Sequence record: PV764603.1
Reading direction: 5' to 3' (one strand)
Length of the DNA: 64,000 bases
In this document: positions 7,057 to 30,527 of the stretch, piece after piece
Layout: each line of letters opens with the position of its first letter
Numbering within the stretch: the stretch's first letter is position 1
The notes under the pieces: generated by a model
The model's input: only the letters and a program-made list of their open reading frames with translations
What the model was told of the DNA's origin: nothing
Databases searched by the model: none
Translations under genes and position numbers: made by a program

Positions 7057-7546
7057 CCTATTCGATCTTGCTCCACACCACTCCACGCTCAAGTGGCTTG
7101 AAGAAGAACTGGAAGTCAGCGAAGCGACTGCTGATGATACCGATGAGTTCGATCAGAAGCGCTTGATCCATCTGCGCCGCCTACGCGATTTGGTTGCGGC
7201 CCTTCCGCTGGCAGCTACCCGCTATCAGCAGTCCCTGCGAGAAATGGAAGCTGCGCACTCGGAAGCAGTGTCCCTCACCAAGGTTGTGATGGATGGCCTT
7301 GCGAACACGCCGGGTGTTAGCTATGAGTTCGTGATCCACAATGGAGAGCCGGTGTTGAAGGTGGTGCCGCGTGCTCTTGAGTACACCGTGGCGATGGGCG
7401 AAGCAGGCGACAACTACATTCGGTCTGTGGCTTTCCAAGGGAAGTTCACCCTGCCTCACTCTTTCCGGTGGCATGCTCTTTGGGAAGCCATGCAAGCTGT
7501 AGCCTTGAATCCAACTGTTGAGTACGCCGATGGCCAAGCAACCTGA
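7034..7546 (+). CDS. Hypothetical protein
   Basis: 170 aa co-oriented ORF with an RBS-like site. Confidence 0.6.
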   Translation: MIRNPVFDLFDLAPHHSTLKWLEEELEVSEATADDTDEFDQKRLIHLRRLRDLVAALPLAATRYQQSLREMEAAHSEAVSLTKVVMDGLANTPGVSYEFVIHNGEPVLKVVPRALEYTVAMGEAGDNYIRSVAFQGKFTLPHSFRWHALWEAMQAVALNPTVEYADGQAT

Positions 7547-8123
7547 ACCTGCCAAGCCGGAAGTAGACATTACCCCAACGGACGCCAAGAAGTATCCGGG
7601 TACGTGGCCGTGTACGATCCCTGCACCTCGCCATTATCCGTTCTCCAAGCACACCAAGTTGAGCACGAAGATGCGCGTGCTGATCCTGCCCGGGCGCATC
7701 GAATACGATCCTGCAATGGCGGACATTGAGGCTGAGGTCAGCGGCCTTGCACGCAAGAACGACGTAACATTGGTGGCTCACGACTACTACCGAGGTGCTT
7801 GCGAAATCATGGCACGGCGTCTCGGGCTAGACTACATGGTCATCAACGTGGACAACGATGATGGTAGGACTCTGCCAACCACGGTAGCACGGGACATACT
7901 CAACACTAGCGTATCCGCGCGCCGACGCGTCCTGAGTAAATCCGATCTTGTGCTGGCGGTCACGGATAGTCCGTTCCTCGCCGCCCTTAGCAAGACCAAT
8001 GCCAAGCGCAAGTCTCCCCTCACGGTCAAGACCTTCCGGGCCAAGTACCACGATTACATTGACGCGAAGGTTAACGCCGTACCTACCACAACTCCCAAGA
8101 AGAAGCGCAAGAAAAAGTCATGA
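7530..8123 (+). CDS. Hypothetical protein, possibly divergent SLOG/YspA-like, with Lys-rich tail
   Basis: C-terminal ARRRVLSKSDLVLAVTDS...AKRKSPLTVK resembles the SLOG C-terminal pattern; ends PKKKRKKKS. Confidence 0.5.
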   Translation: MAKQPEPAKPEVDITPTDAKKYPGTWPCTIPAPRHYPFSKHTKLSTKMRVLILPGRIEYDPAMADIEAEVSGLARKNDVTLVAHDYYRGACEIMARRLGLDYMVINVDNDDGRTLPTTVARDILNTSVSARRRVLSKSDLVLAVTDSPFLAALSKTNAKRKSPLTVKTFRAKYHDYIDAKVNAVPTTTPKKKRKKKS

Positions 8124-8320
8124 GCGATTCCGAACTGTCTCCGTTCTTGGCCCGCAACAGGCCGTACACCCCAACTCCTGAACAGCGGGCAGCGATGGAT
8201 CGCAGCAAGAAATTCCATGATCCCCTCCGAGTGCAGAATGGCGCTCTGATTGGTGAAGGCTCTACCAGTCAGCGCTTGGACGAACTCTTACCCTACGGGT
8301 CTAGACTCATAAAGGCATAG
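8120..8320 (+). CDS. Hypothetical protein
   Basis: 66 aa ORF with ATGA overlap to the previous gene. Confidence 0.5.
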   Translation: MSDSELSPFLARNRPYTPTPEQRAAMDRSKKFHDPLRVQNGALIGEGSTSQRLDELLPYGSRLIKA

Positions 8321-8580
8321 TGATGACGATCCCACACCACACTAGGAAAGACCCTCCCCCGTACAACCCGGTTCTGATCGTGCTGATCTTGGCTCTAATC
8401 GCAGTCATCGTTTACGGCACCTTCATCAAGGAACGGAACGAGGCGCGTCTCAACGAGCACAACAGCCAGCTGTATTCGGAGCTGTGTAAGAAGCAGGGTG
8501 GCAACCCTCTGTACGCAAACGACCCTGACCATCGTACTTGCTTGGTCGGCAACACTCCCATCAACGTAATCCAGCCATGA
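8320..8580 (+). CDS. Bitopic membrane protein with two-Cys extracytoplasmic domain
   Basis: Hydrophobic helix VLIVLILALIAVIVYG, then LCKKQGG...RTC. Confidence 0.65.
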   Translation: MMTIPHHTRKDPPPYNPVLIVLILALIAVIVYGTFIKERNEARLNEHNSQLYSELCKKQGGNPLYANDPDHRTCLVGNTPINVIQP

Positions 8581-9512
8581 CTCTCGACCTGACCTACCCC
8601 AAGTGGTTCGCTCCCATTGAGGAGCAGATTCGTCACGAACGTGACACCTTCCGATACGATCAATGCGTTGCCGTTCGCAGTCCCTTTGGCGAATACGAGC
8701 GCGGCCTCGCTAGCATCTTCGGGCACGGTGATCCTGTCCCTGATCGTACTGGCACCGGCACCCTGTCGCAGTTCTGCCATCAGATGCGATTCAACATGCA
8801 CCCGCATACGGTGCTTGACAGTAGCAGTCCTTACTTCGGTCAGAGCCTGCCGGTGTACCCACTGGTCACCACGAAGAAGGTGCACTTCAAGTCGGTGTTC
8901 CATGAACTGATTTGGATGCTCAAGGGCCTGACCAACATCAAGTACCTTACCGACAACAAGGTCACGATTTGGGATGAGTGGGCAGACGAGAATGGCGACC
9001 TCGGTCCTGTGTACGGCAAGCAGTGGCGTGATTTCGCTGGTGTCGATCAAATCACGGAAGTGCTGGCAGAAATGAAGCGCAACCCGTACAGCCGCCGACT
9101 GGTCATCAGCGCGTGGAATCCGCAGGACTTGCCGGAAATGAAGTTGCAGCCGTGCCACATCCTGTTCCAGTTCATCGTGCGCAACGGTCGAATGAACTGC
9201 CACTTCTTCATGAGGTCGAATGACGCCTTCCTCGGAACGCCCTTCAACATCGCACAGTATGCGCTGCTGAATGCGTTGGTCGCCAAGACTATCGGTGTGC
9301 AGCCGGGTGAGCTTGTGCTGTCGGTGACTGACTTCCACCTGTACTCGAATCATCTGTCTCTGGCCAAGATGCAGCTGACCCGCGAGCCGTATCCCTATCC
9401 CTTCATCAACATCAAGACCGCTCGGGACAACCTGTGGGATTACAAGTTTGATGACGTGGAAATCATCGGCTACAAGTCGCACCCTGCAATCAAGGCGGAC
9501 GTTGCGGTATGA
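8577..9512 (+). CDS. thyA: Thymidylate synthase
   Basis: DRTGTGT, PLVTTKKVHF, GDLGPVYGKQWR, catalytic LQPCH, RSNDAFLGTPFNIAQY, DFHLYSNH. Start at ATG 8577 (ATGA overlap). Confidence 0.97.
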   Translation: MTLDLTYPKWFAPIEEQIRHERDTFRYDQCVAVRSPFGEYERGLASIFGHGDPVPDRTGTGTLSQFCHQMRFNMHPHTVLDSSSPYFGQSLPVYPLVTTKKVHFKSVFHELIWMLKGLTNIKYLTDNKVTIWDEWADENGDLGPVYGKQWRDFAGVDQITEVLAEMKRNPYSRRLVISAWNPQDLPEMKLQPCHILFQFIVRNGRMNCHFFMRSNDAFLGTPFNIAQYALLNALVAKTIGVQPGELVLSVTDFHLYSNHLSLAKMQLTREPYPYPFINIKTARDNLWDYKFDDVEIIGYKSHPAIKADVAV

Positions 9513-9823
9513 CGGCAGTTCTCACTGAACTGGACACCCGACTGGCTGAGGCAGGAATCACCCTGTCTCAGTTCGCACAGCGCATTGGCATTCCCGAGCA
9601 GGCTATCCATGCCAACATCGGGAAGGGCTGGTGCATGATTGACCCCTTGATGGCCGCTGCCTTCGCCCGATATTGGGGAACCACCCCTGACTTCTGGCTC
9701 GGTATCAGTCATCAGCAGAACGTAGAGCGTGCTCGGGAAATCCTCCCGATGATGACCTTCCCTGACCACACAACTTTGTTGAGCGGGCCGCCATGCGATT
9801 TCGTAGACATCAAGATCGGTTAA
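9509..9823 (+). CDS. HigA-like XRE-family HTH protein (orphan antitoxin-like)
   Basis: GITLSQFAQRIGIPEQAI...IDPLMAAAFARYWGTTPDFWLGI matches the HigA pattern (ITxxMAxRLAxxxGTSPEFWL). Confidence 0.75.
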   Translation: MTAVLTELDTRLAEAGITLSQFAQRIGIPEQAIHANIGKGWCMIDPLMAAAFARYWGTTPDFWLGISHQQNVERAREILPMMTFPDHTTLLSGPPCDFVDIKIG

Positions 9824-10155
9824 CTGCGGAAGTCCCTTGTCCAACCACCCACGATGGATTCGCCCGTGTATTCAGCGAGTTCATGCACGAAAGCCTCAAA
9901 CACTACCTTCGGGAAGTCGCATTTCCTGCCGCCAATTTCAGTATGCGCAACCGTGTGTTTGCCAACGAGCATGACGCCCTTGGCAACTCCGCGAATCTAC
10001 AACGAACATTGATTCAGACAGTGACCTACGAGTGCCCATCCCTATCGGCCTCAACAGTCATCTACGAATTGGTCCTTACTCCCACTGGCAAGAAGACGGG
10101 ATGGAAAGGATGGTTGCATGATCGCACACATAAAGGAGAAACGGTAGCCGCATAA
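9793..10155 (+). CDS. Hypothetical protein (start uncertain)
   Basis: Co-oriented ORF filling the gap between the HigA-like gene and the nuclease. Confidence 0.45.
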   Translation: MRFRRHQDRLTAEVPCPTTHDGFARVFSEFMHESLKHYLREVAFPAANFSMRNRVFANEHDALGNSANLQRTLIQTVTYECPSLSASTVIYELVLTPTGKKTGWKGWLHDRTHKGETVAA

Positions 10156-10189
10156 CTCCAGACAGGATTGTCGCTAACCGGTACCCATA

Positions 10190-11185
10190 ATGAAAAAATT
10201 CACCGCACCTCCTGACAATACTTGGGTGCAGCGACAGTTGTTCTCTTGGTGGAAGGAAGCAATCGACCACGGTGGCATGGACCCCGTGGATCAATCACGT
10301 AACGAATTCCTGCGACCTTCCGCCCTCCCTTTCTGTCCCCTCAAAGTCGGCTACAATCGTGTGGTCAATGGCGTGGAGACAGAGCGTTACTCCAGCTTCA
10401 ACGAAAGCTTCTACACCTCCATCGGTACAGCGGTTCACGAACTCTTGCAGAATTTCGTGGGCCGTTTGGCCGTTTCCAAAGGCGTAGAACTCAAGGTCGA
10501 GACACTAGGCCATTGGCACTGCAAGGCATGCGGTCGGAAGCGTAGATTCACCATCTACAAGCCATGCAAGTGCGGAGGCACGCCCGAGTACGAGGAAATC
10601 TCTATCCACTGGCGTACCACCGTTGGCCACATCGACAAGGTGATCCGGGTGGGCAACTGCCTCTTCATTCTTGACTACAAGACCACGGGCTCTATGGCGA
10701 TACGCAAGCATCGCGCTGGCGCTCCTGCTGGTGAGCCTTACTTCCCATACCCAGCCAACCGCGCGCAGATCATGCGTTACGTCGGTCTGTTTGAAAAGGT
10801 GTTCGCCAAGGAGTTTGAACCCGGCGGTCGCTTTGAAGGCACTACGGTCATGGGCGCAATCTTGGCTTACGTGAGCCGCGAGACTGTCCGTGACGTGGCG
10901 TTCGTGTACTTGCCCGCTACGCGTAAGCGCAAGAAGAAGGAATATCGGAAGGCAGTGCGCGACGATGCACTGTTCGTCACGATGAAGGAAGCTGTAGCCA
11001 AGCGTTCCAAGAAACTCTTCATCGAGTTGATCGAGGAAAAGCCCTGCGCTGATCGGGATGACTACGATCAGAAGATGCACAGCAGATACGATGAGTGTCC
11101 GTTAGTCAACGTATGCTTTAGACGCCGACAATTGCTCAAACAAATCGACAAGGCCCTAAAGGGTCAGATCAAACCCAAGGACTAA
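10190..11185 (+). CDS. Cas4-like / PD-(D/E)XK exonuclease
   Basis: RPSALPFCP, IGTAVHE, GHID...ILDYKT, QIMRY, C-terminal C...CPLVNVC (Fe-S-type), plus an inserted CKAC...CKC zinc ribbon. Confidence 0.8.
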   Translation: MKKFTAPPDNTWVQRQLFSWWKEAIDHGGMDPVDQSRNEFLRPSALPFCPLKVGYNRVVNGVETERYSSFNESFYTSIGTAVHELLQNFVGRLAVSKGVELKVETLGHWHCKACGRKRRFTIYKPCKCGGTPEYEEISIHWRTTVGHIDKVIRVGNCLFILDYKTTGSMAIRKHRAGAPAGEPYFPYPANRAQIMRYVGLFEKVFAKEFEPGGRFEGTTVMGAILAYVSRETVRDVAFVYLPATRKRKKKEYRKAVRDDALFVTMKEAVAKRSKKLFIELIEEKPCADRDDYDQKMHSRYDECPLVNVCFRRRQLLKQIDKALKGQIKPKD

Positions 11186-11187
11186 CA

Positions 11188-11775
11188 GTGACTAATCCCA
11201 TCCGCATCGCACTCTGCGGCTTGCCGCACTCGGGCAAGGATACCAGCGCAGATATTCTCGTTGATCGCTTCGACTTTGTACGCCTTCGGTTCGCTACTCC
11301 AGTCAAGATGGCTGCCGCAGAAATGTTCGGATGGGATGCTAACGATGAGGAGGACAAGGACAGTCCTCTGATCCGTAACATCGCAGGGGACTACCTGAGC
11401 AAGCGCGACATTTGGCGCGATATGGCGGAGAACTACATCAAGCCACGTTTCGGGCAGGACTTCTTTGCGCGCGCCCTGACTAAGGAAGCATCGGTCCACT
11501 ATCACTCTGACAACATCGTAGTGACGGACCTGCGCTTCCCCATCGAGGCTATGGTGTTGCGACGTGCTGGCTTTACCGTCATCGAAGTGCAGCGCGAAGA
11601 CCAGCCCATTGTGGACGGCCTCCACAATCATCGGGTCGAAATCCAAGACCTTAGCAACTACATCGACTACCAAATTTCCGCACCCTCGGGCTTGCCTCTG
11701 GAGAACCTCCAAGACAAGTTGGGGCAGGCGTTGCAGGGAATCCTCGTAAAGATCAATCCTGTAAATAAACGCTGA
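11188..11775 (+). CDS. Deoxynucleoside monophosphate kinase (T4 gp1-like)
   Basis: P-loop IALCGLPHSGKDT, FATPVK, VVTDLRFPIE. Confidence 0.85.
   Translation: MTNPIRIALCGLPHSGKDTSADILVDRFDFVRLRFATPVKMAAAEMFGWDANDEEDKDSPLIRNIAGDYLSKRDIWRDMAENYIKPRFGQDFFARALTKEASVHYHSDNIVVTDLRFPIEAMVLRRAGFTVIEVQREDQPIVDGLHNHRVEIQDLSNYIDYQISAPSGLPLENLQDKLGQALQGILVKINPVNKR
11756..11767 (+). promoter_or_regulatory. ATCCTGTAAATA promoter-like motif
   Basis: Exact motif copy at the end of the kinase gene, 37 nt upstream of the next start. Confidence 0.6.
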
Positions 11776-11803
11776 GTATTGAAACGTCCCGCTGGAGACA
11801 TTT

Positions 11804-12748: not shown

Positions 12749-12752
12749 CGCC

Positions 12753-12970: not shown

Positions 12971-14677
12971 ATGAGCAAGAAGAAAACGGGAGGGGCACCG
13001 TGGGGAGGGTGGACTCCCGCCTCTGACTTCCGAAGCGGAGCCAGCTACAACTTTGTTCCTGCGGCAAGTGAGTATTCAAAGCGCGGAGGCGTGCATATCT
13101 ATGTGCGCTATGGTCGAGGTCCGAGCCACGTAACTGTGGTGGATCATGATAGCGACTTCATGCGTATCAAGTGTCCTGACCGGGAACTGCTGATCGTAGC
13201 CAATGGTCAGCGTGCCCATATCTACCGGCCCATGCAGGGCACCTACGACGAGTTCTACAACTTCTCGCCGTTCTGGGAACATTCGTCCGCCGACCTTGAA
13301 TATGGTTGCGTGATGACGAACTACACCAGCTACATCGGTAAGGAGAAACGCTCTTCGGGCATCCGTCGCAAGGACTTCCGCTACGGGATCGACCAGCATA
13401 CCAAGATCATCGCAGACTCCGGTGGCTTCCAGTTGGTCAAGGGTACGGTGGACTACATCGACCCGAAGGAACTGGTCACGTGGTACAACGACAATGTGGA
13501 TTGGGGCATGGTGCTGGATACGCCGCTGGCGTCCAACGGCCTTGAAATCTACACTCGGTCCGCCAAGGTGCAGGCTGAGAACACACGCATCATGATGGAC
13601 AACAAGCGGCCGGGTCTGGAACTGCTGAACATCATCCACGGTGCGGTCGGCAAGGAAATGGACACCTTCCGCAAGATCGTTGAACGCCCTGACATTGATC
13701 GCCTTGCAGTCGGTGGTATCTACTTCGGTTCCATCCTGTCGAGTATCGACCGCCTGTGCGCCATCATGACAGGTGGGCAGCGATACAAGCACTATCACGC
13801 GCTGGGTATCGCCAACATCACGCAGACGATTCCCTTGATGCGTTTGAGTGGTAGCGACATTGCGCCCCTCATCACCTCGGATAGTAGCTCGCACCTACAG
13901 GCAGCTAATGGGCGCAAGTATTACAAGCCCAACGGCACCGAAGCGCTGCCGGAAGTGCTGTTCTACGCTGACGCGGGTGGCTACCATCCGGGCGGCAACC
14001 AGCTGCTCAACTGCACCTGCCCTATCTGCTCAGTGGTGAAGTACACCGACGTTCTAAGCATGGTCAATAGCAACACGATCACGCTGCTGCTGGTGTACCA
14101 CAATCTGTTCTCGATCCAAATGTTCCAGAAGTCCCTGTACGATCGGGTGGCGGGTGTGCCTGTCGGCGAAGCAAAGGATGCTTTGCGCACCTTGTTCGGT
14201 AACTCCAAGGCCAAGCGCAAGCAGCTGCAAGAGTTCTTCCACACGTTGGACTTTGTTGATATGGTCAAGACCTCGGGCTTGGCTGATGCGCGAAAGGAAT
14301 TCGCGTTCTACTTGCCGAAGACGGACAGTGACACAGGTGCTACCAAGACTCTGTTCTCGGGCATCGAAATGGAAGAGACGGCTGATCCCACCCGAGACTT
14401 GGCGATCCTCAAGAAGTATGAAGACGCCCAGGCTGGTAGGCTCAAGTTGTCCTCTACCCCTGAACGCAAGCCTGCCCCACCGAAGAAAAAGAAGGTGAAG
14501 CTGGAAGCTGAGGAAGGCGCGGCTCCTGAGCCCGAGGTTGTCGAACCTGTCAAGTTGGACAAGGCAGGCCGCAAGAAGAAGAACATCGCCAGCGCGACCA
14601 AGATCGGTAACAAGGCGATGGGTGTGACTCGAAGCAAACGCCCCGGTAAGCAGAAGGTCAAGAAGAAAAAGAAGTGA
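12971..14677 (+). CDS. dpdA: TGT-fold transglycosylase, DpdA/arcTGT-like (putative DNA 7-deazaguanine insertase)
   Basis: IADSGGFQ, MVLDTP, IIHG, LAVGG, HYHALG, TSDSSSH, zinc site CTCPIC...HNL. QueD is encoded nearby. N-terminal extension and Lys-rich C-terminal tail. The dpdA symbol is an inference from context. Confidence 0.8.
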   Translation: MSKKKTGGAPWGGWTPASDFRSGASYNFVPAASEYSKRGGVHIYVRYGRGPSHVTVVDHDSDFMRIKCPDRELLIVANGQRAHIYRPMQGTYDEFYNFSPFWEHSSADLEYGCVMTNYTSYIGKEKRSSGIRRKDFRYGIDQHTKIIADSGGFQLVKGTVDYIDPKELVTWYNDNVDWGMVLDTPLASNGLEIYTRSAKVQAENTRIMMDNKRPGLELLNIIHGAVGKEMDTFRKIVERPDIDRLAVGGIYFGSILSSIDRLCAIMTGGQRYKHYHALGIANITQTIPLMRLSGSDIAPLITSDSSSHLQAANGRKYYKPNGTEALPEVLFYADAGGYHPGGNQLLNCTCPICSVVKYTDVLSMVNSNTITLLLVYHNLFSIQMFQKSLYDRVAGVPVGEAKDALRTLFGNSKAKRKQLQEFFHTLDFVDMVKTSGLADARKEFAFYLPKTDSDTGATKTLFSGIEMEETADPTRDLAILKKYEDAQAGRLKLSSTPERKPAPPKKKKVKLEAEEGAAPEPEVVEPVKLDKAGRKKKNIASATKIGNKAMGVTRSKRPGKQKVKKKKK

Positions 14678-15078
14678 AGACCATCACAGACTTGATGGCG
14701 CTTTGCCCGAAGGTTCAGTACGAGAAGGCACGAGAGACTCGCATCTTGAATGCCAGCGCCGGACTGAGCCGTTCGGGCCTTCGCACCATCAGAGCCGTAG
14801 TACAGCGCGTCAGCGACAAGGGCGCGCATGACAAGCATCGGGTAGAGATTCAGTGCGTAGAGCCTGACACTCTACTCGGTGAGGGCTACGTAAAGGTGTG
14901 GTGTGACTGCGGATTCCAAGTCTTCTACGGACAGGAAGTGCTGCTGACTAAGCAGGGTGCCAGTAGCATTCGGTACTCTGACGGCAGCATGCCTAACATT
15001 CGCAATCCGGGCGGAGTCATGATGCTCTGCCACCACACTCTGCGCATCGCCTTAGCAATACGATCCAAGAAGCTATGA
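14674..15078 (+). CDS. SWIM-type zinc finger protein
   Basis: VWCDC...LCHH (CxC-xn-CxH); GTGA overlap. Confidence 0.65.
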   Translation: MKTITDLMALCPKVQYEKARETRILNASAGLSRSGLRTIRAVVQRVSDKGAHDKHRVEIQCVEPDTLLGEGYVKVWCDCGFQVFYGQEVLLTKQGASSIRYSDGSMPNIRNPGGVMMLCHHTLRIALAIRSKKL

Positions 15079-16091
15079 GTCGCAACTCTGCATCTATCCA
15101 AGCTACAAAGACAGTCAAGGAAACGATGCAGGGACGCTGGAATGATAGTCAGATGATGACTGCATTGGACCAGCTTCTCATGCTGGCCGTGGAGCCTATC
15201 ATCAGGCACACGGAGTTCTTTGATAGAAACATGCCAGCGATGCTTTGCTGGTACGCAACAAACACAGGACGCAAGATTAGTTCGGTTGACAAGCCCAAGG
15301 TTCTGCACCTCATGAACCTGTACTTGTTGGCCGACAAGGCTCAGGATAAGGTGCGCTTGGTGCGCCGAATGAAGCTGGAGAGAAACATCCTCTTCTTCAT
15401 CATCAAGCGCTTCTGCACGTTGGCCAAGGACTATCCGAAATTGGAGGTGCTTTACGCTCAGAAGCGCCTGCCGTCGCGTCGGATAGCTATGGAGAGAATT
15501 GAGCAGCTAGTCGGTGCGGGTAAGAACCTAGGTCGCGTGCTTCAACGCGTCAAGTCATGGGAAACCGAAGCTACCAAATTCAGGAATCAGATTCTTGAAC
15601 GGTTCATGCGGCACGCCATGATGCAAGCGGTGAAGTTCAACCGGGAGAATCCACGCACTGACCTTGAAGACGTAACGCAAAACTTTGTGCTGGCGGTGAA
15701 CAAAGCGGTGAACAAGATGAACCCCGATAAGGGAACGCTCGCTCCTTATACTCAGAACTGGATCACGAATGCCAAGCATTCGCCTACACAGTCTCATGAG
15801 TACGGGATCGCATACTCCCTGTCTCCGCATGCAAAGCGGGCTGTGGCTAGGGGCGATCTACAACTGGTGAATATTTCTTCGGACTTTGAGACTGAGGAAG
15901 TGTTCAACCAACCGGATAGCACAGATGAGTTTGAGAAACTCACCGAGGAAGATCGGGCACAGCGGGTACGCCTGCTGGCAAAGATTGCTGACCCGGATGG
16001 TTTTGCGCGCCAAGAGTTGGGCATTGAGGAACTGCTGCTTCCGCATGAAGTGGTACGCATCGACGCCAAACGACATTCTTGTAAACAATAA
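15075..16091 (+). CDS. Phage RNA polymerase sigma factor (sigma70 region 2-like)
   Basis: DLEDVTQNFVLAVNKAVNKMNPDKGTLAPYTQNWI aligns with sigma region 2 (DLIQEG.IGL.KAV.KFDP.KG..FSTYA.WWI). Confidence 0.75.
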   Translation: MSRNSASIQATKTVKETMQGRWNDSQMMTALDQLLMLAVEPIIRHTEFFDRNMPAMLCWYATNTGRKISSVDKPKVLHLMNLYLLADKAQDKVRLVRRMKLERNILFFIIKRFCTLAKDYPKLEVLYAQKRLPSRRIAMERIEQLVGAGKNLGRVLQRVKSWETEATKFRNQILERFMRHAMMQAVKFNRENPRTDLEDVTQNFVLAVNKAVNKMNPDKGTLAPYTQNWITNAKHSPTQSHEYGIAYSLSPHAKRAVARGDLQLVNISSDFETEEVFNQPDSTDEFEKLTEEDRAQRVRLLAKIADPDGFARQELGIEELLLPHEVVRIDAKRHSCKQ

Positions 16092-16114
16092 GTGATTCAA
16101 CAGGAGACCCAACT

Positions 16115-17685
<1,571 letters not shown>

Positions 17686-17792
17686 CCTCGGCAGTCCCTG
17701 ATTGGCCTAAAAACACAGGAAAATCCTTGCCTCAAAACGCCCAAAAGTCGGTAGGATTAGGGGTTTTGAGGCATCCTGGGACCATCAGATTT

Positions 17793-17828
17793 GGGAGGAC
17801 GTGCTACCCCACGTCCTCCCTTATTTTT
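17793..17828 (+). terminator. Intrinsic terminator between SSB-like gene and recA
   Basis: 11-bp stem gggaggacgtg/cacgtcctccc followed by ttattttt. Confidence 0.85.
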
Positions 17829-17851
17829 CGGTATTTTCGACGGAATCCAGT

Positions 17852-19321
17852 ATGGCAAAGAAGGCTGTCAAGCCTGCAAAGAAATCGGTAAAGAAGGGAG
17901 CGGCCAAGGCTGCCTCCAAGAAGAAGGAAGCCCCAGCTAAACTCAAGGCTTCTGCACCTGCGGTAAAGGTTTGGCGTCCTAACTACGACGACGTTATCAC
18001 GGTCGTGGAAAAGAAGTCCAAGCTGTCTAGCAACATGCAGAATCGTTTCGACTACGCCATGCACTCGGGACTGCTCTGTCAGGACATGCTGCTGGGTGGT
18101 GGCTACGTGTATGGTGCAATGGTAACGAACGTCGGTGGTGAACAGTCTGCCAAGTCCACCAACTGCTCTAACTTCCTCGCCACCTTGCTCGACCTGCCGG
18201 AAGAAGAACAGCCCGGTCTGATTGTGTCTGCCGACCCCGAGGGTTCGACCGATGCAGTCTACATGAGCAACATGATGAAGAATCGAATTCCGGTAGAGGA
18301 AATCTTTGGCCAGCGCGCCAAGGACGGGTCGTGGGCTGTACGTCCTCGCATCCGCTACTACCCGGAAGAGCGCGGTGAACTACTGCTCAATGCACTGGCG
18401 ATGATCCTGCGTCGTCTGCCGGACATGGAGTTGATGGATCAGCAGTGGTACTACGTGTACGAGAACACCAAGGAGAACCGTAGGATCGTTGGTGATCGGT
18501 ACAACAAGAGTTTCTTCTCCAAGCACAACAAGTTCTACGTACAGGCACCGAACAACGCACCGCAGTGCGTGATCGTGTTGGATAGCTGGGTTAGCTTGGT
18601 CCCTGAGAACATGGACGATGATGATCCGGCAGCGGGCCTCGCAGCGGTTGCACGTCTGCTGGCCGCTAACCTGTCGAAGATCAAGGGTAAGCTGCGTCGT
18701 AAGAACGCGATCCTAATGGGTGTGAACCAGCTTCGTGAGAAGCCGATGGCGCAGGGTGATCCCCGCTATGAACCCGGTGGTCAGGCGCTGCGCTTCCAGT
18801 CGGACATTCGTATCTGGCAAACGCCGCGTGCTCTTAGCACCCCGCAGATCGGCCTGAGTGGTGCGAGCGGTCCTGTGCATGAAGAGACTTCGATCACTGG
18901 CGAAGGTACTGACAAGTATCGGTACATCCACATGGTTGCGAAGAAGAACAAGCTGGCCGTTCCGGGCCATGAGTGCTTCGCTCGCATTTGGGTGGCTGAC
19001 GAAGACGGTATCGCGCATGGCTTCTGTCCCGCGTTCGACGTGTGGTACTTCCTCAAGATGACGGGCCAGTTGTCCGGCAGCCAGAAGAAGTTCTCGGTCA
19101 AATTGAACAAGGGTCAAGAGTTCAAGGCCAACATGGTTGACCTCAAGAAGATGATCCTGCTCAAGGGCGCCGAGCGCAAGGAACACTTCCGTAAGATGAA
19201 GCTCAAGCCGTTCGACATAAAGGCGTTCTGCCTCAAGCAGATCAAGTCGGGCAAGGCTAAGGAACTCATGTACCAGCATTCCAAGGCGGGTGCCGCTGAG
19301 GAACAGGAGGACGAGGAATAA
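17852..19321 (+). CDS. recA: RecA/UvsX-like recombinase
   Basis: Variant Walker A GGEQSAKST, VIVLDSWVSL, A..AR, NQLREK, EPGGQALRFQSDIRI. Start at ATG 17852; Lys/Ala-rich N-terminal tail. Confidence 0.9.
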   Translation: MAKKAVKPAKKSVKKGAAKAASKKKEAPAKLKASAPAVKVWRPNYDDVITVVEKKSKLSSNMQNRFDYAMHSGLLCQDMLLGGGYVYGAMVTNVGGEQSAKSTNCSNFLATLLDLPEEEQPGLIVSADPEGSTDAVYMSNMMKNRIPVEEIFGQRAKDGSWAVRPRIRYYPEERGELLLNALAMILRRLPDMELMDQQWYYVYENTKENRRIVGDRYNKSFFSKHNKFYVQAPNNAPQCVIVLDSWVSLVPENMDDDDPAAGLAAVARLLAANLSKIKGKLRRKNAILMGVNQLREKPMAQGDPRYEPGGQALRFQSDIRIWQTPRALSTPQIGLSGASGPVHEETSITGEGTDKYRYIHMVAKKNKLAVPGHECFARIWVADEDGIAHGFCPAFDVWYFLKMTGQLSGSQKKFSVKLNKGQEFKANMVDLKKMILLKGAERKEHFRKMKLKPFDIKAFCLKQIKSGKAKELMYQHSKAGAAEEQEDEE

Positions 19322-19638
19322 TGATGCAACAGGCTATCGACAAACTGCGTGGAAGGTTCGGGCAGCCTGACGGTAGCCTGTCCATCACAGTGAGCACTAA
19401 GCACAAGTCCGAAGCAGAAGTGCTGACGCTGAACCTCACTGTCACGTACCTCTATTCACAGATCGGGAACACTATCGTGCTCGACCCCATCAACGCGACA
19501 AGCCTAAGCGCGTTCCTGCGCCGACAGCTTGAACCGAAGATCATCAAGGCATTCGCCAAGGTGAGTGAGTCTAAGGCACGATTGGTTCCCGGCTCTGACC
19601 TGAAACACCTAAACCGCATTCAATTGATGGAGAAGTGA
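19321..19638 (+). CDS. Hypothetical protein
   Basis: TAATG overlap with recA. Confidence 0.6.
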   Translation: MMQQAIDKLRGRFGQPDGSLSITVSTKHKSEAEVLTLNLTVTYLYSQIGNTIVLDPINATSLSAFLRRQLEPKIIKAFAKVSESKARLVPGSDLKHLNRIQLMEK

Positions 19639-20099
19639 GCGTGTACCGTAGCACGAAAACATGGGGCCATGAACGAGGCTTTAGCTGTGCCTTCCGACAG
19701 TGGCGTGCTCACGACAGCCATTGCCGATTGGTTCACGGGTACGCCCTTGGCTTCAAGTTTGTCTTCGAGACAGACCAGCTGGACGAACGCAATTGGGTAG
19801 TGGACTTCGGGGGCCTTGACGACCTCAAGCAAATCCTCGCGGACAACTTCGACCACACAACCATCATCGCCGAAGACGACCCGGAACTGGAATGGTTCAG
19901 GGAAGCAGACCGCCGTGGTGTCCTGCGCCTTGTCGTATTCCCATACGCGGGTTGCGAGCGCTTCGCCGAAATGGTGTACGCTGTGACCGAACAGTGGCTA
20001 AAGGATGCAGGGTTCAGTCCTCGCTGCCGGTTGGTATCGGTAGAAGTAAGTGAGCACGGCGCAAACTCTGCGATCTATCATGGCAGTAGTCAAAGCTAA
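19635..20099 (+). CDS. queD: 6-carboxy-5,6,7,8-tetrahydropterin synthase (QueD/PTPS)
   Basis: SCAFRQWRA..SHCRLVHGY, NWVVDFGGL, FDH, GCERFAE, V.EHGANSA.Y. Confidence 0.9.
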   Translation: MSVYRSTKTWGHERGFSCAFRQWRAHDSHCRLVHGYALGFKFVFETDQLDERNWVVDFGGLDDLKQILADNFDHTTIIAEDDPELEWFREADRRGVLRLVVFPYAGCERFAEMVYAVTEQWLKDAGFSPRCRLVSVEVSEHGANSAIYHGSSQS

Positions 20100-23054: not shown

Positions 23055-23912
23055 ATGTCACTGAGTAATCACGCACGACGCGAACTGGAACTGGCGGGCC
23101 TACTGAGCCCGGAGAGTGACTACGGCGGTATGCTTGGCGATGCCGTGCTCCAGCTGATCGACACCTTCTCTGCGCAAGGCCACAGCGGCGCAAGTGCAGA
23201 GGTTGTAATCGACCTATTTAGCCGGGTCGCCCGCTACGAAATCCTGACGCCCATCGTTGAGGATAAACCGGAGGATTGGCATGACGTGTCAGAGCCCAGC
23301 GGATACCCGTGCTTCCAGCACCGTCGCCTGAGCCGACTGTTCAAGGACGGCGAGGGTGTGATGCGCCTGCATGGTGCAGTGGTCAGCATCGACCCCTCGG
23401 GCGAACGCTTCCACGGTCCTGCTATCGAGGTCAAGCTGCCGATCATGTCCGACGTCAAGGAACGTCACGTTGACTTTGATGGCAACGAGATTCCGCAGGT
23501 TGTGTGGGAGCGTCTGAACTCTGAGCACCGCGAACTGCTGGACGTTGGCGTCGAAGAGATTGATGACCTCGACGCGCGCAACCTTGTGGTGGAGGAACTG
23601 ATTCCGGTGCCGACCACGCTGACCGGAAGTGACGCAGCACTCGAAGCGGTTCAGTACGCCCACGATCACGAAAAGATTCTCTACACTTCGGTTGACGGCC
23701 TCAAGACTCTGCTGCTCAACGAGAAATTCCTTGCTGATTGGCAGCCCGCAAAGCAGTACAGCCTCATGATCGGGCGCGGCTACTGCGGTACGTGGCATGG
23801 CACTCCTGTTGTGACCACTGGCTATCTTGACCCGACCAAGTACAACCATCTGATCGGTATCGAAGGTCTGTACTTCACCACTGCTGTATCCACTGATAAC
23901 GAGGAAAACTAA
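23055..23912 (+). CDS. Conserved phage hypothetical protein
   Basis: N-terminal HARRELELAG...FSAQGHSGASA...LTP motif, a pattern I recognise from phage hypotheticals; AAGGA RBS. Confidence 0.65.
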   Translation: MSLSNHARRELELAGLLSPESDYGGMLGDAVLQLIDTFSAQGHSGASAEVVIDLFSRVARYEILTPIVEDKPEDWHDVSEPSGYPCFQHRRLSRLFKDGEGVMRLHGAVVSIDPSGERFHGPAIEVKLPIMSDVKERHVDFDGNEIPQVVWERLNSEHRELLDVGVEEIDDLDARNLVVEELIPVPTTLTGSDAALEAVQYAHDHEKILYTSVDGLKTLLLNEKFLADWQPAKQYSLMIGRGYCGTWHGTPVVTTGYLDPTKYNHLIGIEGLYFTTAVSTDNEEN

Positions 23913-24490
23913 TGGCTACTCCGCGCAAGAAGAAGTCGGCTGCACCGAAGGCAAAGAAGGTAGTGAAGCCTGCCAAGCCTGCCAAGACCTTGACCCTGAC
24001 GGACAAGTTCATCAACGGCATCATCAACGGTGACACCCCGCTGACCCATGACCAGCTGGAACTGCTCCAGCGTGCGGTGCTGGTGGCAGATGGCGACGAA
24101 CCTGCTGCGGCCGAAGTGGAAAGCAACGCGGTGTCTATCAGCGAGTCCCCGAGGGTGTGGAAGTCGTCGGATCCGGTGAAGCAGGCAGAGCGCAGCGTCA
24201 CCAACCTCCTGAGCGATGATGCAGCTGATTGCTGTGAACTCTCGGTGTACAGTGTGGGCAGCCTGCTGACCTACGTGGAATCGGAGTTCAATCAACTGAC
24301 TGGCGCTCTGAGTCATACGGAGGACATGCTCTATCCTGTGCTCAACACTGACGTGCTGGGTATTCCGACTGAATTCGCTGAGACGCCGGATAACGTTGCG
24401 TCCAACAACCGCACCCTGATCCGACTGCTGAACAACATCCGCAAACTGCGCGGTGAAGTCTACAGTCTCACCCATCGTATCAGCCTGTAA
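23912..24490 (+). CDS. Helical hypothetical protein with Lys-rich N-terminal tail (paralog of next gene)
   Basis: MATPRKKKSAAPKAKK start; C-terminal half resembles 24501..24854. Confidence 0.65.
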   Translation: MATPRKKKSAAPKAKKVVKPAKPAKTLTLTDKFINGIINGDTPLTHDQLELLQRAVLVADGDEPAAAEVESNAVSISESPRVWKSSDPVKQAERSVTNLLSDDAADCCELSVYSVGSLLTYVESEFNQLTGALSHTEDMLYPVLNTDVLGIPTEFAETPDNVASNNRTLIRLLNNIRKLRGEVYSLTHRISL

Positions 24491-25717: not shown

Positions 25718-25886
25718 AGTGGGCAGAAGATCAGTCGAAGCTGCCGGACTGGTTCATTGACCAAGCATTACCTCCCGGCACTATCGACAATCGCTGTGTG
25801 GAAGTGGATGGCAAATCGTATGCCATCACTAACATCACTGACCCGCGTAGCCTACACGCCATCATCGCATACATGAGGAACTATCA

Positions 25887-26198: not shown

Positions 26199-26205
26199 AA
26201 CCGAG

Positions 26206-26236
26206 GCTCCATTCCCTAGCGGGATGGGGCCTTTTT
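26206..26236 (+). terminator. Intrinsic terminator
   Basis: Imperfect stem aggctccattccc/gggatggggcct plus T-run. Confidence 0.7.
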
Positions 26237-26246
26237 CGTATTCGGA

Positions 26247-26258
26247 ATCCTGTAAATA
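26247..26258 (+). promoter_or_regulatory. ATCCTGTAAATA promoter-like motif
   Basis: Intergenic, just after the terminator and before the clamp-loader gene. Confidence 0.65.
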
Positions 26259-26262
26259 ATCA

Positions 26263-27540
26263 GTGGCAGATGCCTCCATTGGAGAACCCGAAGTGAGCGA
26301 CACGAAGAGTAAGAAGAAGTCCAAGAACAAGGATGGGAAGGTCAAGAAGAAGTCCAAGTCTACGGAGGTTGCAGTACCCGTAAGCGATACGGTGGACAAT
26401 CGCAGCCTCGCTGTGCGCTGGCGTCCGAAGGACATTGATGACCTCGTTGGTCAGACGGAGATCATCAACAAGTTCAGGGGCATGTTGAAGACCAAGAAGA
26501 TTCCGGGCGCGATCCTGCTGGTCGGTCCCACTGGCTGTGGCAAGACCACTGTTAGCCAGATGATCGCTCGGTACGTCAACTGCGAAACCATGAACGCATG
26601 TGGCAAGTGTCAGAACTGCCTGATGCCGATTGAGTCCCATCCTGACTACGAGCAGGTGAATGCTTCGGAGAAGCGTGGCATCGACGACGTGCGCGCGATC
26701 ATCCAGCGCAGCAAGAACCGTCCGCGCCTCGGTAACCTTCGCATCCTGCATCTGGACGAAGTGCACCAGCTTACACCACAGGCTGCTGAGGCCCTGCTGG
26801 TGCCTCTGGAGAAGCCACCGGAACAGACGCTGTATATCCTGAGCACCACCGATCCGCAGATGCTCAAGCAGACGATGCGCAATCGCTGTGTGCCGATGAA
26901 CATCCAGCTGGTGCCGACGGCGGACGTAATCAAGCGCATCAAGTTCATCGCAGGGAAGGAGAACATCAAGGTCGGGGATGAGGTGATCGAGCATCTGGCC
27001 AACCTGTCGCAGGGTTACATGCGTGACAGCGTGCAGTTGCTGGAAGCTGTGCAGATGCAGCTGGCTAACAACCCGAAGCTCAGTGCCGACGAACTCAAGG
27101 CCATCTTGAGCAACAACGCACAAGCTGGTGGTCAGGAAGGTTTGGACGACCTAGCGATCAAGGTGCTGACTGCGTGCTACGGGCTCAATCGTGTTGGCGT
27201 CGCCAAGTACATGCTCGACCTGCGTACCGATTGGGTGCCGTTCCTGTCCAAGTGCATCTGGCTGAATCAGTACATCGTGGATGCGGAACTGACCAAGAAC
27301 ATGCGCTACCACCCGAACGTGTGGCATAACCCACTCAACAAGCGCTTCGCGTCTGTCATCAAGAACTCGGTCGAGGGCTTCGATCCCAGCAAGGGCAAGG
27401 TGATTGAAATGCTCGCATCGTTGCAGCGTACCCTGATCGACCTCCGACAGAAGTGCATCAGTGGCGGCATTGCCAGCGTCGAGCGGATGATGATTACCTC
27501 CCACCTGATCGGCTGGGTTGTGGATTCCAAGAAGGGATAA
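26263..27540 (+). CDS. dnaX: DNA polymerase III gamma/tau-like clamp loader subunit
   Basis: RWRPKDIDDLVGQ, Walker A GPTGCGKTT, zinc C...CGKCQNC, NASEKRGIDDVR, LDEVHQLT..AAEALL.PLEKPP, NRC. Confidence 0.88.
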   Translation: MADASIGEPEVSDTKSKKKSKNKDGKVKKKSKSTEVAVPVSDTVDNRSLAVRWRPKDIDDLVGQTEIINKFRGMLKTKKIPGAILLVGPTGCGKTTVSQMIARYVNCETMNACGKCQNCLMPIESHPDYEQVNASEKRGIDDVRAIIQRSKNRPRLGNLRILHLDEVHQLTPQAAEALLVPLEKPPEQTLYILSTTDPQMLKQTMRNRCVPMNIQLVPTADVIKRIKFIAGKENIKVGDEVIEHLANLSQGYMRDSVQLLEAVQMQLANNPKLSADELKAILSNNAQAGGQEGLDDLAIKVLTACYGLNRVGVAKYMLDLRTDWVPFLSKCIWLNQYIVDAELTKNMRYHPNVWHNPLNKRFASVIKNSVEGFDPSKGKVIEMLASLQRTLIDLRQKCISGGIASVERMMITSHLIGWVVDSKKG

Positions 27541-27779
27541 TGAGCAAGGTCATTGAATACGTCGGGGACGACGCTATGGAGCGGCTGTGCAAAGACATGG
27601 CCGCAGACGTGTTGCAACACACTGATCCATTCAAACGGGCAACCGTGTACGAAGATTTACGCTTGACCCGCAAGATATTCATTAAGCTGCCTTTGGGATG
27701 GCACGAAGTAGTGGGCTTCCACGTCATCGGTACCACTCCTGAAACTGTGCAGCCACTACTCACTATGGTGAACAGATGA
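27540..27779 (+). CDS. Hypothetical protein
   Basis: TAATG overlap with the clamp loader. Confidence 0.55.
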   Translation: MSKVIEYVGDDAMERLCKDMAADVLQHTDPFKRATVYEDLRLTRKIFIKLPLGWHEVVGFHVIGTTPETVQPLLTMVNR

Positions 27780-28219
27780 ACACCGATAAGAGCGCCACGA
27801 CCGAAGCTTTCACCAAGCGTAACGCCAACCGAAAGAAAGACAATCAAGTAGCCACAGCAAAACGGGATCGCCGTGATGCTCGCCGCAAGACAGTCAAGCT
27901 GGCCCGTAAGGTGGAGCATCTTGAAGGGGAAGTGATTCGGTTGCGCTCAGAAAAGTCTGCCGCGCTGCGCGACGTTCAAATGTTGGGAGCAGAGAACAGC
28001 ACGCTGGAGGTGGAGGTGGAAACGCTAACCGCCACCATCGCCGAGCAGGCCGAAGAGTTGGCTGAGGTGTACGCCAAGAAGCACGATGCCGAACGCCAAG
28101 CCCGTGAGTGGATGCTGGCTCGTGGTTGGTGGAAGCGACAGGCAGGGTTGCTGACGTGTGGTGTGATCGGTCTGTTTATCACCATGATGGCCCTCATCTT
28201 CAAGAGTAACAATGGCTAA
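27776..28219 (+). CDS. Coiled-coil protein with C-terminal membrane anchor
   Basis: Heptad-like helix followed by hydrophobic LLTCGVIGLFITMMALIF. Confidence 0.6.
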   Translation: MNTDKSATTEAFTKRNANRKKDNQVATAKRDRRDARRKTVKLARKVEHLEGEVIRLRSEKSAALRDVQMLGAENSTLEVEVETLTATIAEQAEELAEVYAKKHDAERQAREWMLARGWWKRQAGLLTCGVIGLFITMMALIFKSNNG

Positions 28220-30527
28220 GAAGCAGAAGCTGGGGTGGCGATTCGGCCACCTCAGCCTCACCAACGTTGTGTATTTCAAGAAGGCGGAGTTAGACCTCGG
28301 GTACGAGGGCACCACCGTCATCAAAGGTCTGAACAAGAACTCTCGGCTCAAGCGCAAGACCAGCAACGGCGTAGGTAAGTCGGTGTTGGTTGCATCCCTT
28401 GCTAACGTGGTGCGCAACTCGGCACCAGCACTCAGCATCGGCAAGCGCAACAGTGGTGCCAAAACTAGCCTGTTAATCAAACCGAACAGCGCAATTGAGT
28501 TTGACGTTCGGTGTAATGGCAATGACTACGGCATCAAGAAGTACCGGGATAAGTCTGCGTCAGTGAAGTATCAGATCACCGAGAACGGTAAGGACATGAA
28601 GTTCCCTACCGCGACCAAGGCCGAAGCGCACATCGCTGACACCCTGTTCCCTATTTCGGATGATGAGTTCTACAGTTACGTCTATCTGCATGGCACCCGC
28701 ACCTTCCCGTTGCAGATGGGCACCTCCACGGATCGTATGCAGTTCTTCTCTGATATGTTCCGGTTGGAGAAGTTCGACTTGGTACGCGCGGCATGTAATG
28801 CACGACGCAACGAGTTGAAGGACAGCGAGATTCGGATCAAGGAGCTACGCAAGCAGCTGGCTGCCTTGGACGAAGAAGCGGGACGCGTAGACATTGATAT
28901 GCTGCGCGCTAGGGCTGTCAAGTATCAGGGCAAGATCAAGAAGCTGGAGAAGAAGGTCAAACGACTGCGTAGTCGCCAGCGCATCTACACGGTCTACACC
29001 ACGCATGCGAAGGAATGGGAGAAGCTGGATCACAGCATTCCGTTGAAGGACCAGCTGAAACAGGTCAGCGCCAAGATCACGAAGTTGGATGACGCTGCAA
29101 CCGCATGGCGCAAGTACGAACGCCACCAAGATGACTTGACTCGCTGGAAGGCCGAGTACCTCAAGGCCACTGAGAAGGCGGGTAAGCTCACGCTGGAAAA
29201 GTGCAGGGAGAAAATCGAAAGCGCCAAGAGGGCGGACCGTGATGCACGTCGAGCACTGGATGGGCTGCGCAAGCCGACCCAACCCGAGGCCGTAGCCAAG
29301 GCCACGTTCAACCCTGCTGACTACGGGTTGGAAGGCGACACGTTCAAGCACTGGATCGTGGCAGCCGATAAGGAACGTGCGCGCTTTGAAGCACTGATCG
29401 GTCTACAGAAGCAGATCAACAAGATCGGTAGCAAGGGTGGCAAGTGTTTCGTGTGTGGCTCGAAAGGCGGGAAAGTCACTGACCATCTTCCCGAGTACGA
29501 GAATCAGGCGAAGCGCTGGCGCAAGGCAACAGAGCGGATCGAAGCAGCACGGGACTACGCTGAGTATCAGGAAGAGGCAGCAGAGTACGAGAAGGAACTG
29601 TCGGCATTCAAGAAGCAGCGCAAGAAGCTGCAAGCGATCCTTGATGACTTGCCCGACGTGTCCAAGTATGAGAAGGCCATCAAGTATCTGGAATGGCTGG
29701 AAGAGAATCCCAAGCCCAAGTGGAAGGGCGACGTTCCTGAGAAGCCCAGCACCAAGGCACGTGACAAGTTGGTTGCACAGCAGTCGGTGATCCGCACCCT
29801 GCTACCTGTTGAAGAACAGTTGAGGGAAGCGGCGCAGATCGACGTTGAGGAACTCCGATCGGCTGACAAGGAATATGAGTCGGTAAGCAAGAAGCTGTCT
29901 AACATGGTGGCCAAGAACGCGGAGCTTGCACCTCGCATTGAGTATCAGGAAAAGCTGCTGCGCGCCATCAAGCAGCTTCGGGCACAGGTACGCAACATTG
30001 GCGCAGACTTGGAAGACCTCCCGATCCTCGATAGCCTGATCGACATTTACTCCAAGAACGGCCGCAAGTTGGAGGTGATGAAACAGTTCGCCCTGAGTCT
30101 AGAGCACCACATGAACGCTAACGCCCCGCTGGTGTTCCCGGAGCCTATGCGTTTTGAGTTCGTGGTGCAGGCGAACAACTTTAGCATCAACGTCACCCGA
30201 GGGACTGGCAAGGAAGCGCTGACTTCTGACGTTCGGTTCCTTAGTGGTGCCGAGAGTAAGCAGTTCAACCTGTGCCTAGTGAAGTCCCTGCTTCCGATGA
30301 TCCCTGCCTCGCGCCGTGCCAACATCATTGTGCTGGACGAATGCGAAGCGAATCTCAGCGAGGCAGCGCGTGACCTGTATGTCAACGACTTCATCCCAGC
30401 ATTGCAAAAGGTAGTGCCTCACGTCATCGTCATCACTCCACTAGATGACGTATACCCATCCGCCCGAGTCTTCACCGTGGTCAAGGATGGCAACGAATCC
30501 AAACTCATTTCAACGGGTATGTCATGA
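28212..30527 (+). CDS. Rad50/SbcC-like (gp46-like) ATPase
   Basis: Walker A SNGVGKS, long coiled coil with CFVC zinc hook, signature LSGAES, Walker B IIVLDECEANL. Confidence 0.9.
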   Translation: MAKKQKLGWRFGHLSLTNVVYFKKAELDLGYEGTTVIKGLNKNSRLKRKTSNGVGKSVLVASLANVVRNSAPALSIGKRNSGAKTSLLIKPNSAIEFDVRCNGNDYGIKKYRDKSASVKYQITENGKDMKFPTATKAEAHIADTLFPISDDEFYSYVYLHGTRTFPLQMGTSTDRMQFFSDMFRLEKFDLVRAACNARRNELKDSEIRIKELRKQLAALDEEAGRVDIDMLRARAVKYQGKIKKLEKKVKRLRSRQRIYTVYTTHAKEWEKLDHSIPLKDQLKQVSAKITKLDDAATAWRKYERHQDDLTRWKAEYLKATEKAGKLTLEKCREKIESAKRADRDARRALDGLRKPTQPEAVAKATFNPADYGLEGDTFKHWIVAADKERARFEALIGLQKQINKIGSKGGKCFVCGSKGGKVTDHLPEYENQAKRWRKATERIEAARDYAEYQEEAAEYEKELSAFKKQRKKLQAILDDLPDVSKYEKAIKYLEWLEENPKPKWKGDVPEKPSTKARDKLVAQQSVIRTLLPVEEQLREAAQIDVEELRSADKEYESVSKKLSNMVAKNAELAPRIEYQEKLLRAIKQLRAQVRNIGADLEDLPILDSLIDIYSKNGRKLEVMKQFALSLEHHMNANAPLVFPEPMRFEFVVQANNFSINVTRGTGKEALTSDVRFLSGAESKQFNLCLVKSLLPMIPASRRANIIVLDECEANLSEAARDLYVNDFIPALQKVVPHVIVITPLDDVYPSARVFTVVKDGNESKLISTGMS

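Follow-up and report, generated by a model that had tools for sequence, protein, structure and literature searches.

The first 64,000 bases (bases 1-64000, hereafter the window) of the genome of Xanthomonas phage PhiXhv-16 (PV764603), a jumbo phage of 229,154 bp, encode a RecA-like recombinase, a clamp-loader subunit and further proteins with lysine-rich terminal tails. Across the full proteome such tails were concentrated on DNA-handling enzymes, and related phages carry them as well. We regard it as somewhat probable that these termini serve the phage as electrostatic tethers to DNA. PhiXhv-16 is a myovirus isolated from sewage; the phages PhiXhv-12, PhiXhv-15, Ep026 and Ep032 are 97-100% identical to it. 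A preliminary description of the window had quoted six lysine-rich tails and had proposed that they form an electrostatic addressing system. All six were present as written in the translations of the window.

Lysine-Rich Tails Are Enriched on DNA-Handling Enzymes

The whole PhiXhv-16 genome was rebuilt from the public record and the tail survey was run on the full proteome. A segment was counted as lysine-rich if it contained at least six lysines in 12 residues and as terminal if it lay no more than 60 residues from either end of the protein. A lysine-rich segment was found in 21 proteins, compared with approximately one expected from a proteome-wide shuffle, and in 14 of the 21 it was terminal. 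This shuffle served as the null model; shuffling within single proteins was uninformative, the tailed proteins being rich in lysine overall. Terminal tails were carried by 6 of the 28 recognisable DNA-handling enzymes and by none of the 55 other annotated proteins, which belong to the virion, lysis, and nucleotide and sugar metabolism (Fisher p=0.001). Set against all remaining proteins, the proportions were 6/28 and 9/302 (p=6e-4). When any lysine-rich segment was counted, they were 11/28 for DNA enzymes and 0/55 for the other annotated proteins (p=1e-6). Thus, the claim that many DNA-transaction proteins carry such tails held, and an equal tail frequency on non-DNA proteins, named beforehand as the outcome contrary to it, was not seen.

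Beyond the window, terminal tails were found on a GyrA-like topoisomerase II subunit (N-terminal, MAKVAKKVKGKKVKSGKVKA), on a family-A DNA polymerase (...VKKGKKDKKKKEKA) and on a protein of phrog_17701 ('topoisomerase'). Nine tailed proteins, namely eight hypotheticals and a TGT-like protein, had no recognised function. Nearly all of these function-less proteins map to the parts of the genome that hold the genes for replication and recombination and the early genes; the virion module encodes none of them. No structural or virion protein of recognised function in the PhiXhv-16 proteome carried a lysine tail. The codons of the tails lying outside 15800-18400 were mixed and not pure AAG repeats. 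Tails were called H1-like if they were terminal, contained at least about 35% lysine together with alanine, proline, serine or glycine, and were predicted to be disordered. The tails of PhiXhv-16 are H1-like lysine-rich low-complexity tails by their composition, and that of RecA also by its modelled disorder.

RecA and the Clamp Loader

The RecA/UvsX-like recombinase is encoded at 17852..19321 on the plus strand. Its N-terminal tail, MAKKAVKPAKKSVKKGAAKAASKKK, is rich in lysine, alanine and proline and comprises residues 1 to approximately 42 (17852-17977), while the C-terminal end is acidic (EEQEDEE). The proposed identity as RecA was upheld by Pfam PF00154 (7e-13, 49 bits versus a cut-off of 27 bits) and by phrog_97 (2.4e-33). 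The tails had also been described as disordered. For RecA, the one tail modelled, AlphaFold2 with a 14-sequence alignment gave a core with a predicted template modelling score of 0.75 and placed residues 1-68 at a predicted local distance difference test score of 29-42, below the value of 50. The model is consistent with a disordered N-terminal tail.

From contigs of large phages, 120 RecA homologues (35-73% identity, all with PF00154) were inspected. At least five lysines in 12 residues occurred within the first 70 residues in 69 of the 120; the sequence of the tail was not conserved. The acidic C-terminal end was present in 73/120. A profile search of IMG/VR with the 14-sequence RecA alignment yielded four good loci. 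The RecA of PhiXhv is approximately 36-39% identical to those of cultured relatives, so that PhiXhv represents a divergent member lineage of the tailed group. Between PhiXhv-15 and PhiXhv-16 seven residues of the RecA core differ, and the lysine tails lying outside 15800-18400 are unchanged between both phages. Several RecA homologues of 824-850 residues contain intein domains (PF14890).

The clamp-loader AAA+ subunit (26263..27540, plus strand) carries an N-terminal lysine- and serine-rich tail, SDTKSKKKSKNKDGKVKKKSKST, at residues 12-34 (26296-26364). Its identity, likewise upheld, follows from DNA_pol3_delta2 (PF13177, 7.5e-29), RFC lid domains and phrog_5846 (1e-63). The record labels this gene 'DnaA'. 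This label was rejected: no DnaA family matched, and the protein is a DnaX/RFC-like clamp loader. Its tail is strong only in PhiXhv; the PaBG orthologue starts with just MAKKKEK, and the Motura orthologue has no tail.

Lysine Tails in Related Phages

For the comparison between genomes, which included five control genomes, proteins with at least eight lysines in 20 residues were counted per genome. The genes of the comparison genomes were called by a codon-bias open reading frame picker, and their N-termini are possibly a few residues off. This count, suggested as a check in the preliminary description, gave 16 proteins each for PhiXhv-16, PaBG and Motura and 0 to 4 for the others: four in phiRSL1, three in T4, three in XacN1, which infects the same host genus Xanthomonas, and none in phiKZ and phiCbK. 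For the shorter window of six lysines in 12 residues, composition alone leads one to expect approximately 1-3 proteins. Lysine tails are therefore a trait of the whole lineage and not peculiar to PhiXhv-16.

The GyrA-like proteins of PhiXhv, PaBG and Motura carry N-terminal tails, whereas T4 gp52 has none. Homologues of hyp90827, hyp209077 and hyp23912 kept their tails. The polymerase of PhiXhv carries a strong tail and that of PaBG a weaker one; in Motura and RSL1 the polymerase has none. Among the tailed proteins of PaBG are GyrB and a DnaB-like helicase as well as a resolvase and a ParB-like protein; among those of Motura are the terminase, a primase and a subunit of a polymerase, and the N-terminus of the terminase is lysine-rich in both Motura and phiRSL1. 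In PaBG and Motura taken together, all lysine-tailed proteins with a PHROG function, save one peptidase, have a DNA-handling role (DnaB-like helicase, resolvase, endonuclease, ParB-like protein, primase, polymerase). Since the set of tailed enzymes differs between the phages, it looks as if DNA enzymes had gained tails repeatedly, and not as if a single fixed set had been inherited.

A phmmer search with 366 called phiKZ proteins at E<1e-3 detected no phage-nucleus homologues (shell, PhuZ, multisubunit RNA polymerase) in the PhiXhv-16 proteome, the two proteins of the stretch 15800-18400 being left out of the target set. The only matches were DHFR, thymidylate synthase, the large subunit of RNR and one membrane protein. 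An organisation around a phage nucleus was rejected on the basis of this search. The earlier remark that the window contains no nucleus-shell gene thus holds genome-wide.

The Single-Stranded DNA-Binding Protein and Its Charge-Block Tail

[quoted passage not shown] It consists of a core of approximately residues 1-260 and a C-terminal tail encoded from about 16900. The protein belongs to phrog_15004 (1.4e-63, residues 22-304), and the orthologous genes of PaBG, Motura, Lu11, RSL1 and Sauron bear the annotation SSB; no sequence match was found in the PDB. In the tail of approximately 200-260 residues, poly-Asp runs alternate with blocks of lysine, glycine and proline (KKGKGKGKKPVKGKGKGKK); four lysine-rich blocks lie between the poly-Asp runs and a lysine block stands at the end.

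In the record the coding sequence 16115-17584 closes with (Met-Thr)n(Met)n and an orphan coding sequence at 17581-17685 is split off. Read one base later, the gene continues with 40 aspartates followed by EDEKPKKGKGKKPVKGK...KSKKSK up to a stop codon at 17685. The frameshift of 1 nt lies near 17419-17421 in a long (GAT/GAC)n tract. The gene is uninterrupted in PhiXhv-15 (465 residues), and the PhiXhv-12 copy is broken at another place. Because the PhiXhv-15 copy is intact and the alternative frame restores the Asp/Lys tail, the poly-Met end is the product of a one-base frameshift, most likely an assembly error. The SSB-like tail with lysine blocks and poly-Asp that had been pointed out earlier is present, and its poly-Met ending had to be corrected. 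The lengths of the poly-Asp runs differ among PhiXhv-12, -15 and -16.

The SSB tail of PhiXhv-15 has a net charge of -64. The variance of the charge asymmetry of the SSB was 0.405 compared with 0.092 +/- 0.016 in shuffles (z=19), and four homologues at 33-42% core identity gave z=12-17. Positive and negative charges are thus strongly separated along the extended disordered tail, the pattern expected of a charge-block condensate scaffold. The block tail was present in 10/11 SSB homologues (33-61% core identity). Block-tail SSBs were found in PaBG, Lu11, Motura, phiRSL1 and BcepSauron and in four IMG/VR contigs, RecA always adjoining. In these five phages the RecA has a basic N-terminal tail in 5/5 and the SSB a block tail in 5/5. 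The gene order sigma factor-SSB-RecA (window 15075-19321) is kept in PaBG, Lu11, phiRSL1 and BcepSauron, and Motura has the SSB-RecA pair; by this order the lineage of nucleus-less jumbo phages can be conveniently recognised.

Several SSB homologues end in the canonical bacterial tip, for example DDDIPF in Motura, DDEIPF in the IMG/VR contig L008, and DDDIPF or IPY in P0128-P0132. These sequences suggest that tip-bearing phage SSBs may be able to engage host SSB-interacting proteins. The tip of bacterial SSB-Ct, (I/V)P(F/Y), was not found in PhiXhv-15 and -16, whose SSB ends ...KGKKSKKSK; in PhiXhv the tip is replaced by a lysine block.

Probable Electrostatic Tethering and Its Alternatives

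The explanation we favour, with some reservation, is that the lysine-rich termini are selected, disordered tethers that bind DNA electrostatically and without specificity. According to this proposal the tails would make the enzymes that handle DNA bind polyanions, DNA above all, more strongly but without specificity, and the added affinity would concentrate the enzymes locally and keep them longer on the phage chromosome during its replication. In PhiXhv the tails are carried by RecA, by the clamp loader and topoisomerase II, and by DNA polymerase and the TGT-like enzyme; in its relatives the carriers are primase, helicase, resolvase, ParB and terminase. Within one lineage (PhiXhv, PaBG, Lu11, Motura, BcepSauron and phiRSL1) single enzymes appear to gain and lose tails repeatedly, and the lineage also retains an SSB whose long tail is built of charge blocks. 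This reading agrees with the enrichment on DNA enzymes and the indifference to exact sequence, and also with the finding of tails at N- and C-termini alike and on enzymes that act on double-stranded DNA only. DNA binding by the tails and its benefit are what we infer from these features.

Non-specific DNA binding by lysine-rich low-complexity regions of prokaryotic DNA-processing proteins has been described in a general survey (PMC6821194, PMC7398561). The lysine repeats of Streptomyces TopA confer processivity, and mycobacterial Ku is likewise cited for residence and processivity (PMC7398561, PMC6821194). For jumbo phages, neither lysine-rich tails nor SSBs with charge blocks were described in the PhiXhv-16 paper, in a 2026 review of these phages or in what full-text literature searches returned. 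Thus, the tether principle is known; a viral replication machinery that employs it systematically, alongside a conserved charge-block SSB, is undescribed in the literature searched.

Several points weigh against tethering. Product names of the record and family scans supplied the functional classes, which were assigned non-blind. The enrichment rests on the annotated fraction of the proteome, with nine tailed proteins lacking an assigned function. The tailed peptidase of PaBG does not conform to the pattern. Moreover, generic tethering leaves the huge acidic tracts of the lineage, in the SSB and in a poly-Glu protein, unexplained.

In the foremost alternative the lysine tails would dock on the poly-Asp/Lys tail of the SSB, perhaps also on the poly-Glu protein, and form a fuzzy electrostatic hub or coacervate, that is, a membraneless compartment for replication and recombination. 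We consider this possible but doubtful. The strongly negative net charge and extreme charge segregation of the SSB tail, shared by its homologues, agree with it, as does the conservation of the block tail beside RecA. Two further charge-block proteins are encoded by PhiXhv-16. The first (PV764603 78785-80308, minus strand) is an H1/AlgP-like protein with an N-terminal domain of approximately 170 residues made of AKKA/KPAA repeats, a small central domain and lysine-block/poly-Glu repeats; its final 80 residues or so are acidic, and no family was matched in Pfam or PHROG. The second (PV764603 92017-92796, minus strand), a hypothetical protein of 259 residues encoded near the DNA ligase gene, has a lysine-rich N-terminal tail and three acidic C-terminal blocks. 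Acidic-tract proteins were enriched in the genomes of the lineage (PhiXhv-16 10, PaBG 8, Motura 6, phiRSL1 8; T4 1, phiCbK 1, phiKZ 0), yet XacN1 with its few lysine tails also has 6, so that acidic tracts follow the lineage less cleanly than lysine tails do. The missing phiKZ-type shell homologue also fits a membraneless compartment, and precedents for such compartments exist in the phase separation of Escherichia coli SSB (PMC7584906) and in nucleolar Asp/Glu tracts with lysine blocks (PMC11938373).

The coupling between tails and SSB proved to be loose. The IMG/VR contigs L008 and L009 encode a block SSB and a RecA without a lysine tail, by which a strict co-variation of the two features was rejected, and phiRSL1 has a block SSB but few lysine tails. 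Furthermore, the lysine blocks of the SSB could neutralise its acidic blocks within the chain, and topoisomerase II, the TGT-like protein, ParB and terminase are tailed without a known link to SSB. Since topoisomerase II and the TGT-like protein, and ParB, resolvase and terminase in the relatives, are enzymes of double-stranded DNA only, generic DNA affinity fits better than specific addressing to the SSB. Of the addressing system proposed in the preliminary description, the tails themselves stood as real, terminal, enriched on DNA enzymes and conserved in character in the lineage; their docking on the poly-Asp tail and the compartment remain conjectural.

An extended form, which we rate as rather unlikely, is that a charge grammar underlies the replication factory of the nucleus-less lineage (PhiXhv, PaBG, Lu11, Motura, Sauron, RSL1). 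The SSB block tail and the H1-like/poly-Glu protein would then be the scaffold, and the lysine tails the address labels that bring polymerase and clamp loader, RecA and topoisomerase, and enzymes of DNA modification into the coacervate. If true, such a factory would be a bacterial-virus analogue of the nucleolar organisation by Asp/Glu tracts and lysine blocks. If the SSB tail organises the tailed enzymes, the arrangement would be a membraneless equivalent of the nucleus formed by phages of the phiKZ type and a tractable bacterial system for charge-pattern-driven partitioning.

It is very unlikely that the tails are directed to another polyanion or site, such as RNA, polyphosphate granules, the anionic membrane or, by co-packaging with DNA, the capsid. 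Electrostatic tails are by nature non-discriminating among polyanions, and the lysine-rich H1-like AlgP associates with polyphosphate granules of Pseudomonas (PMC9239181), but the enrichment specific to DNA enzymes, the untailed state of the recognised virion proteins and the lack of a hydrophobic anchor beside the tails argue against such targets. Least probable of all is a neutral by-product, either tolerated low-complexity growth at gene ends or MAKK... N-termini selected for translation initiation only: the neighbouring poly-Asp tract does change its length between near-identical isolates, some orthologues are tailed and others not, and a MAKK start is common among the N-terminal tails, but tails of 20-60 residues persist across approximately 35% core identity, are confined to DNA enzymes among annotated PhiXhv-16 proteins, occur at C-termini too, are encoded by mixed codons and are few or absent in the control phages (n=5, one infecting the same host genus).

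Should the tails work as DNA tethers, they would provide a cheap and evolvable way to bias a set of enzymes toward viral DNA without a protein shell. Tethering would also explain the 'extra' low-complexity ends that annotation pipelines see on ordinary enzymes. Moreover, two annotations were corrected, a poly-Met 'hypothetical protein' to a frameshifted SSB and 'DnaA' to a clamp loader, and the finding supplies a simple lineage marker.

Other Tail-Bearing Genes of the Window

The protein encoded at 12971..14677 (plus strand) had been called DpdA-like. It possesses two C-terminal lysine-rich segments (approximately 14465-14503 and 14633-14674), which contain PPKKKKVK and KQKVKKKKK. TIGR00432 (7.8e-7) and TIGR00449 (tgt_general, 9e-4) matched below their cut-offs, the structure of ArcTGT (1iq8) gave E=0.016, and no match was obtained in Pfam or PHROG. 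The DpdA model NF041059 scored E=0.84 with 8 bits versus a cut-off of 200. Thus, a weak similarity to the TGT superfamily stood, and membership of DpdA was not established. In Motura the basic end of the homologue (1e-18) is merely short. The record also annotates a QueD-like enzyme (19635-20099) and, elsewhere, a radical-SAM activase and a GTP cyclohydrolase; at 47083-47862 it annotates a polyamine aminopropyltransferase. Judged by these annotations, 7-deazaguanine modification of DNA and phage-made polyamines, both of which would bear on DNA charge, are possible.

Two hypothetical proteins are tailed. One of 197 residues (7530..8123, plus strand) ends in the lysine-rich tail PTTTPKKKRKKKS (approximately 8082-8120), which includes PKKKRKKKS; it had no family match in Pfam, PHROG or NCBIfam and is identical in PhiXhv-15. 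The other, of 192 residues (23912..24490, plus strand), starts with MATPRKKKSAAPKAKKVVKPAKPAK (23912-23986) and is flanked by SbcD-like and FEN-like genes. Family scans recognised no family. A word search for its function returned only the protein itself, and a full HMMER scan of 1.8 billion representatives yielded one real homologue (P0136, 46% identity), which starts with MATPKKKKKAAPKKAVRKPAVRKK, and one spurious repeat protein. The SbcC-like ATPase (28212..30527, plus strand; phrog_77, 2e-44) contains an internal lysine-rich stretch at residues 237-252, which is probably part of a coiled coil and not a tail.

An open reading frame of 56 residues (52019..52189, plus strand) ends in RKRGKSKYTRKKGKRK. 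It shares the basic C-terminal peptide RKRGKSKYTRK(K/R)GKRK with the open reading frame 36692-36817 (33 nt, 85% identical); outside this peptide the two are unrelated. The large subunit of the terminase (window 1-3582) is unusually long with 1193 residues.

Comparison with Known Systems

The closest likeness is found in the actinobacterial proteins TopA, Ku and HupB of Streptomyces and Mycobacterium, in which disordered terminal extensions rich in lysine, alanine and proline are likewise attached to ordinary DNA enzymes and provide non-specific DNA binding and processivity (PMC7398561, PMC6821194). The phage differs in deploying its tails over much of the replication, recombination and topology machinery, including RecA, clamp loader and polymerase. 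Moreover, the phage tails turn over between orthologues.

In bacterial SSB a disordered linker with an acidic tip serves as a hub for interactions and forms condensates. With this protein the phage SSB has in common the single-stranded DNA-binding core and the disordered tail, and several phage homologues end ...DDDIPF. In contrast, the phage core belongs to phrog_15004 and gave no match to the bacterial OB tetramer family in the searches made. The phage tail consists of approximately 200 residues of acidic and lysine blocks and is not rich in glycine, glutamine and proline, and in PhiXhv it ends in a lysine block without IPF.

The acidic C-terminal tails of T7 gp2.5 and T4 gp32 contact basic patches of their polymerase, helicase and recombinase partners. 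These partners present folded basic patches, and the acidic tails comprise approximately 20-50 residues. Electrostatic coupling through an acidic SSB tail would be the likeness to PhiXhv; T4 was almost without lysine tails or acid tracts in our scan. Prothymosin-alpha and histone H1, disordered polyacid and poly-Lys partners, bind each other tightly and stay disordered. In the nucleolus, long acidic tracts interspersed with lysine blocks define partitioning into condensates (PMC11938373). Both systems are eukaryotic, and the likeness of PhiXhv lies in the pattern of acidic and lysine blocks.

Finally, the AKKA/KPAK composition of AlgP of Pseudomonas and of other H1-like KPAA-repeat proteins recurs in the tails of RecA and the 23912 protein and in the N-terminal domain of the 78785-80308 protein. 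AlgP is a stand-alone protein tied to polyphosphate granules (PMC9239181), whereas in PhiXhv the motif is appended to enzymes.

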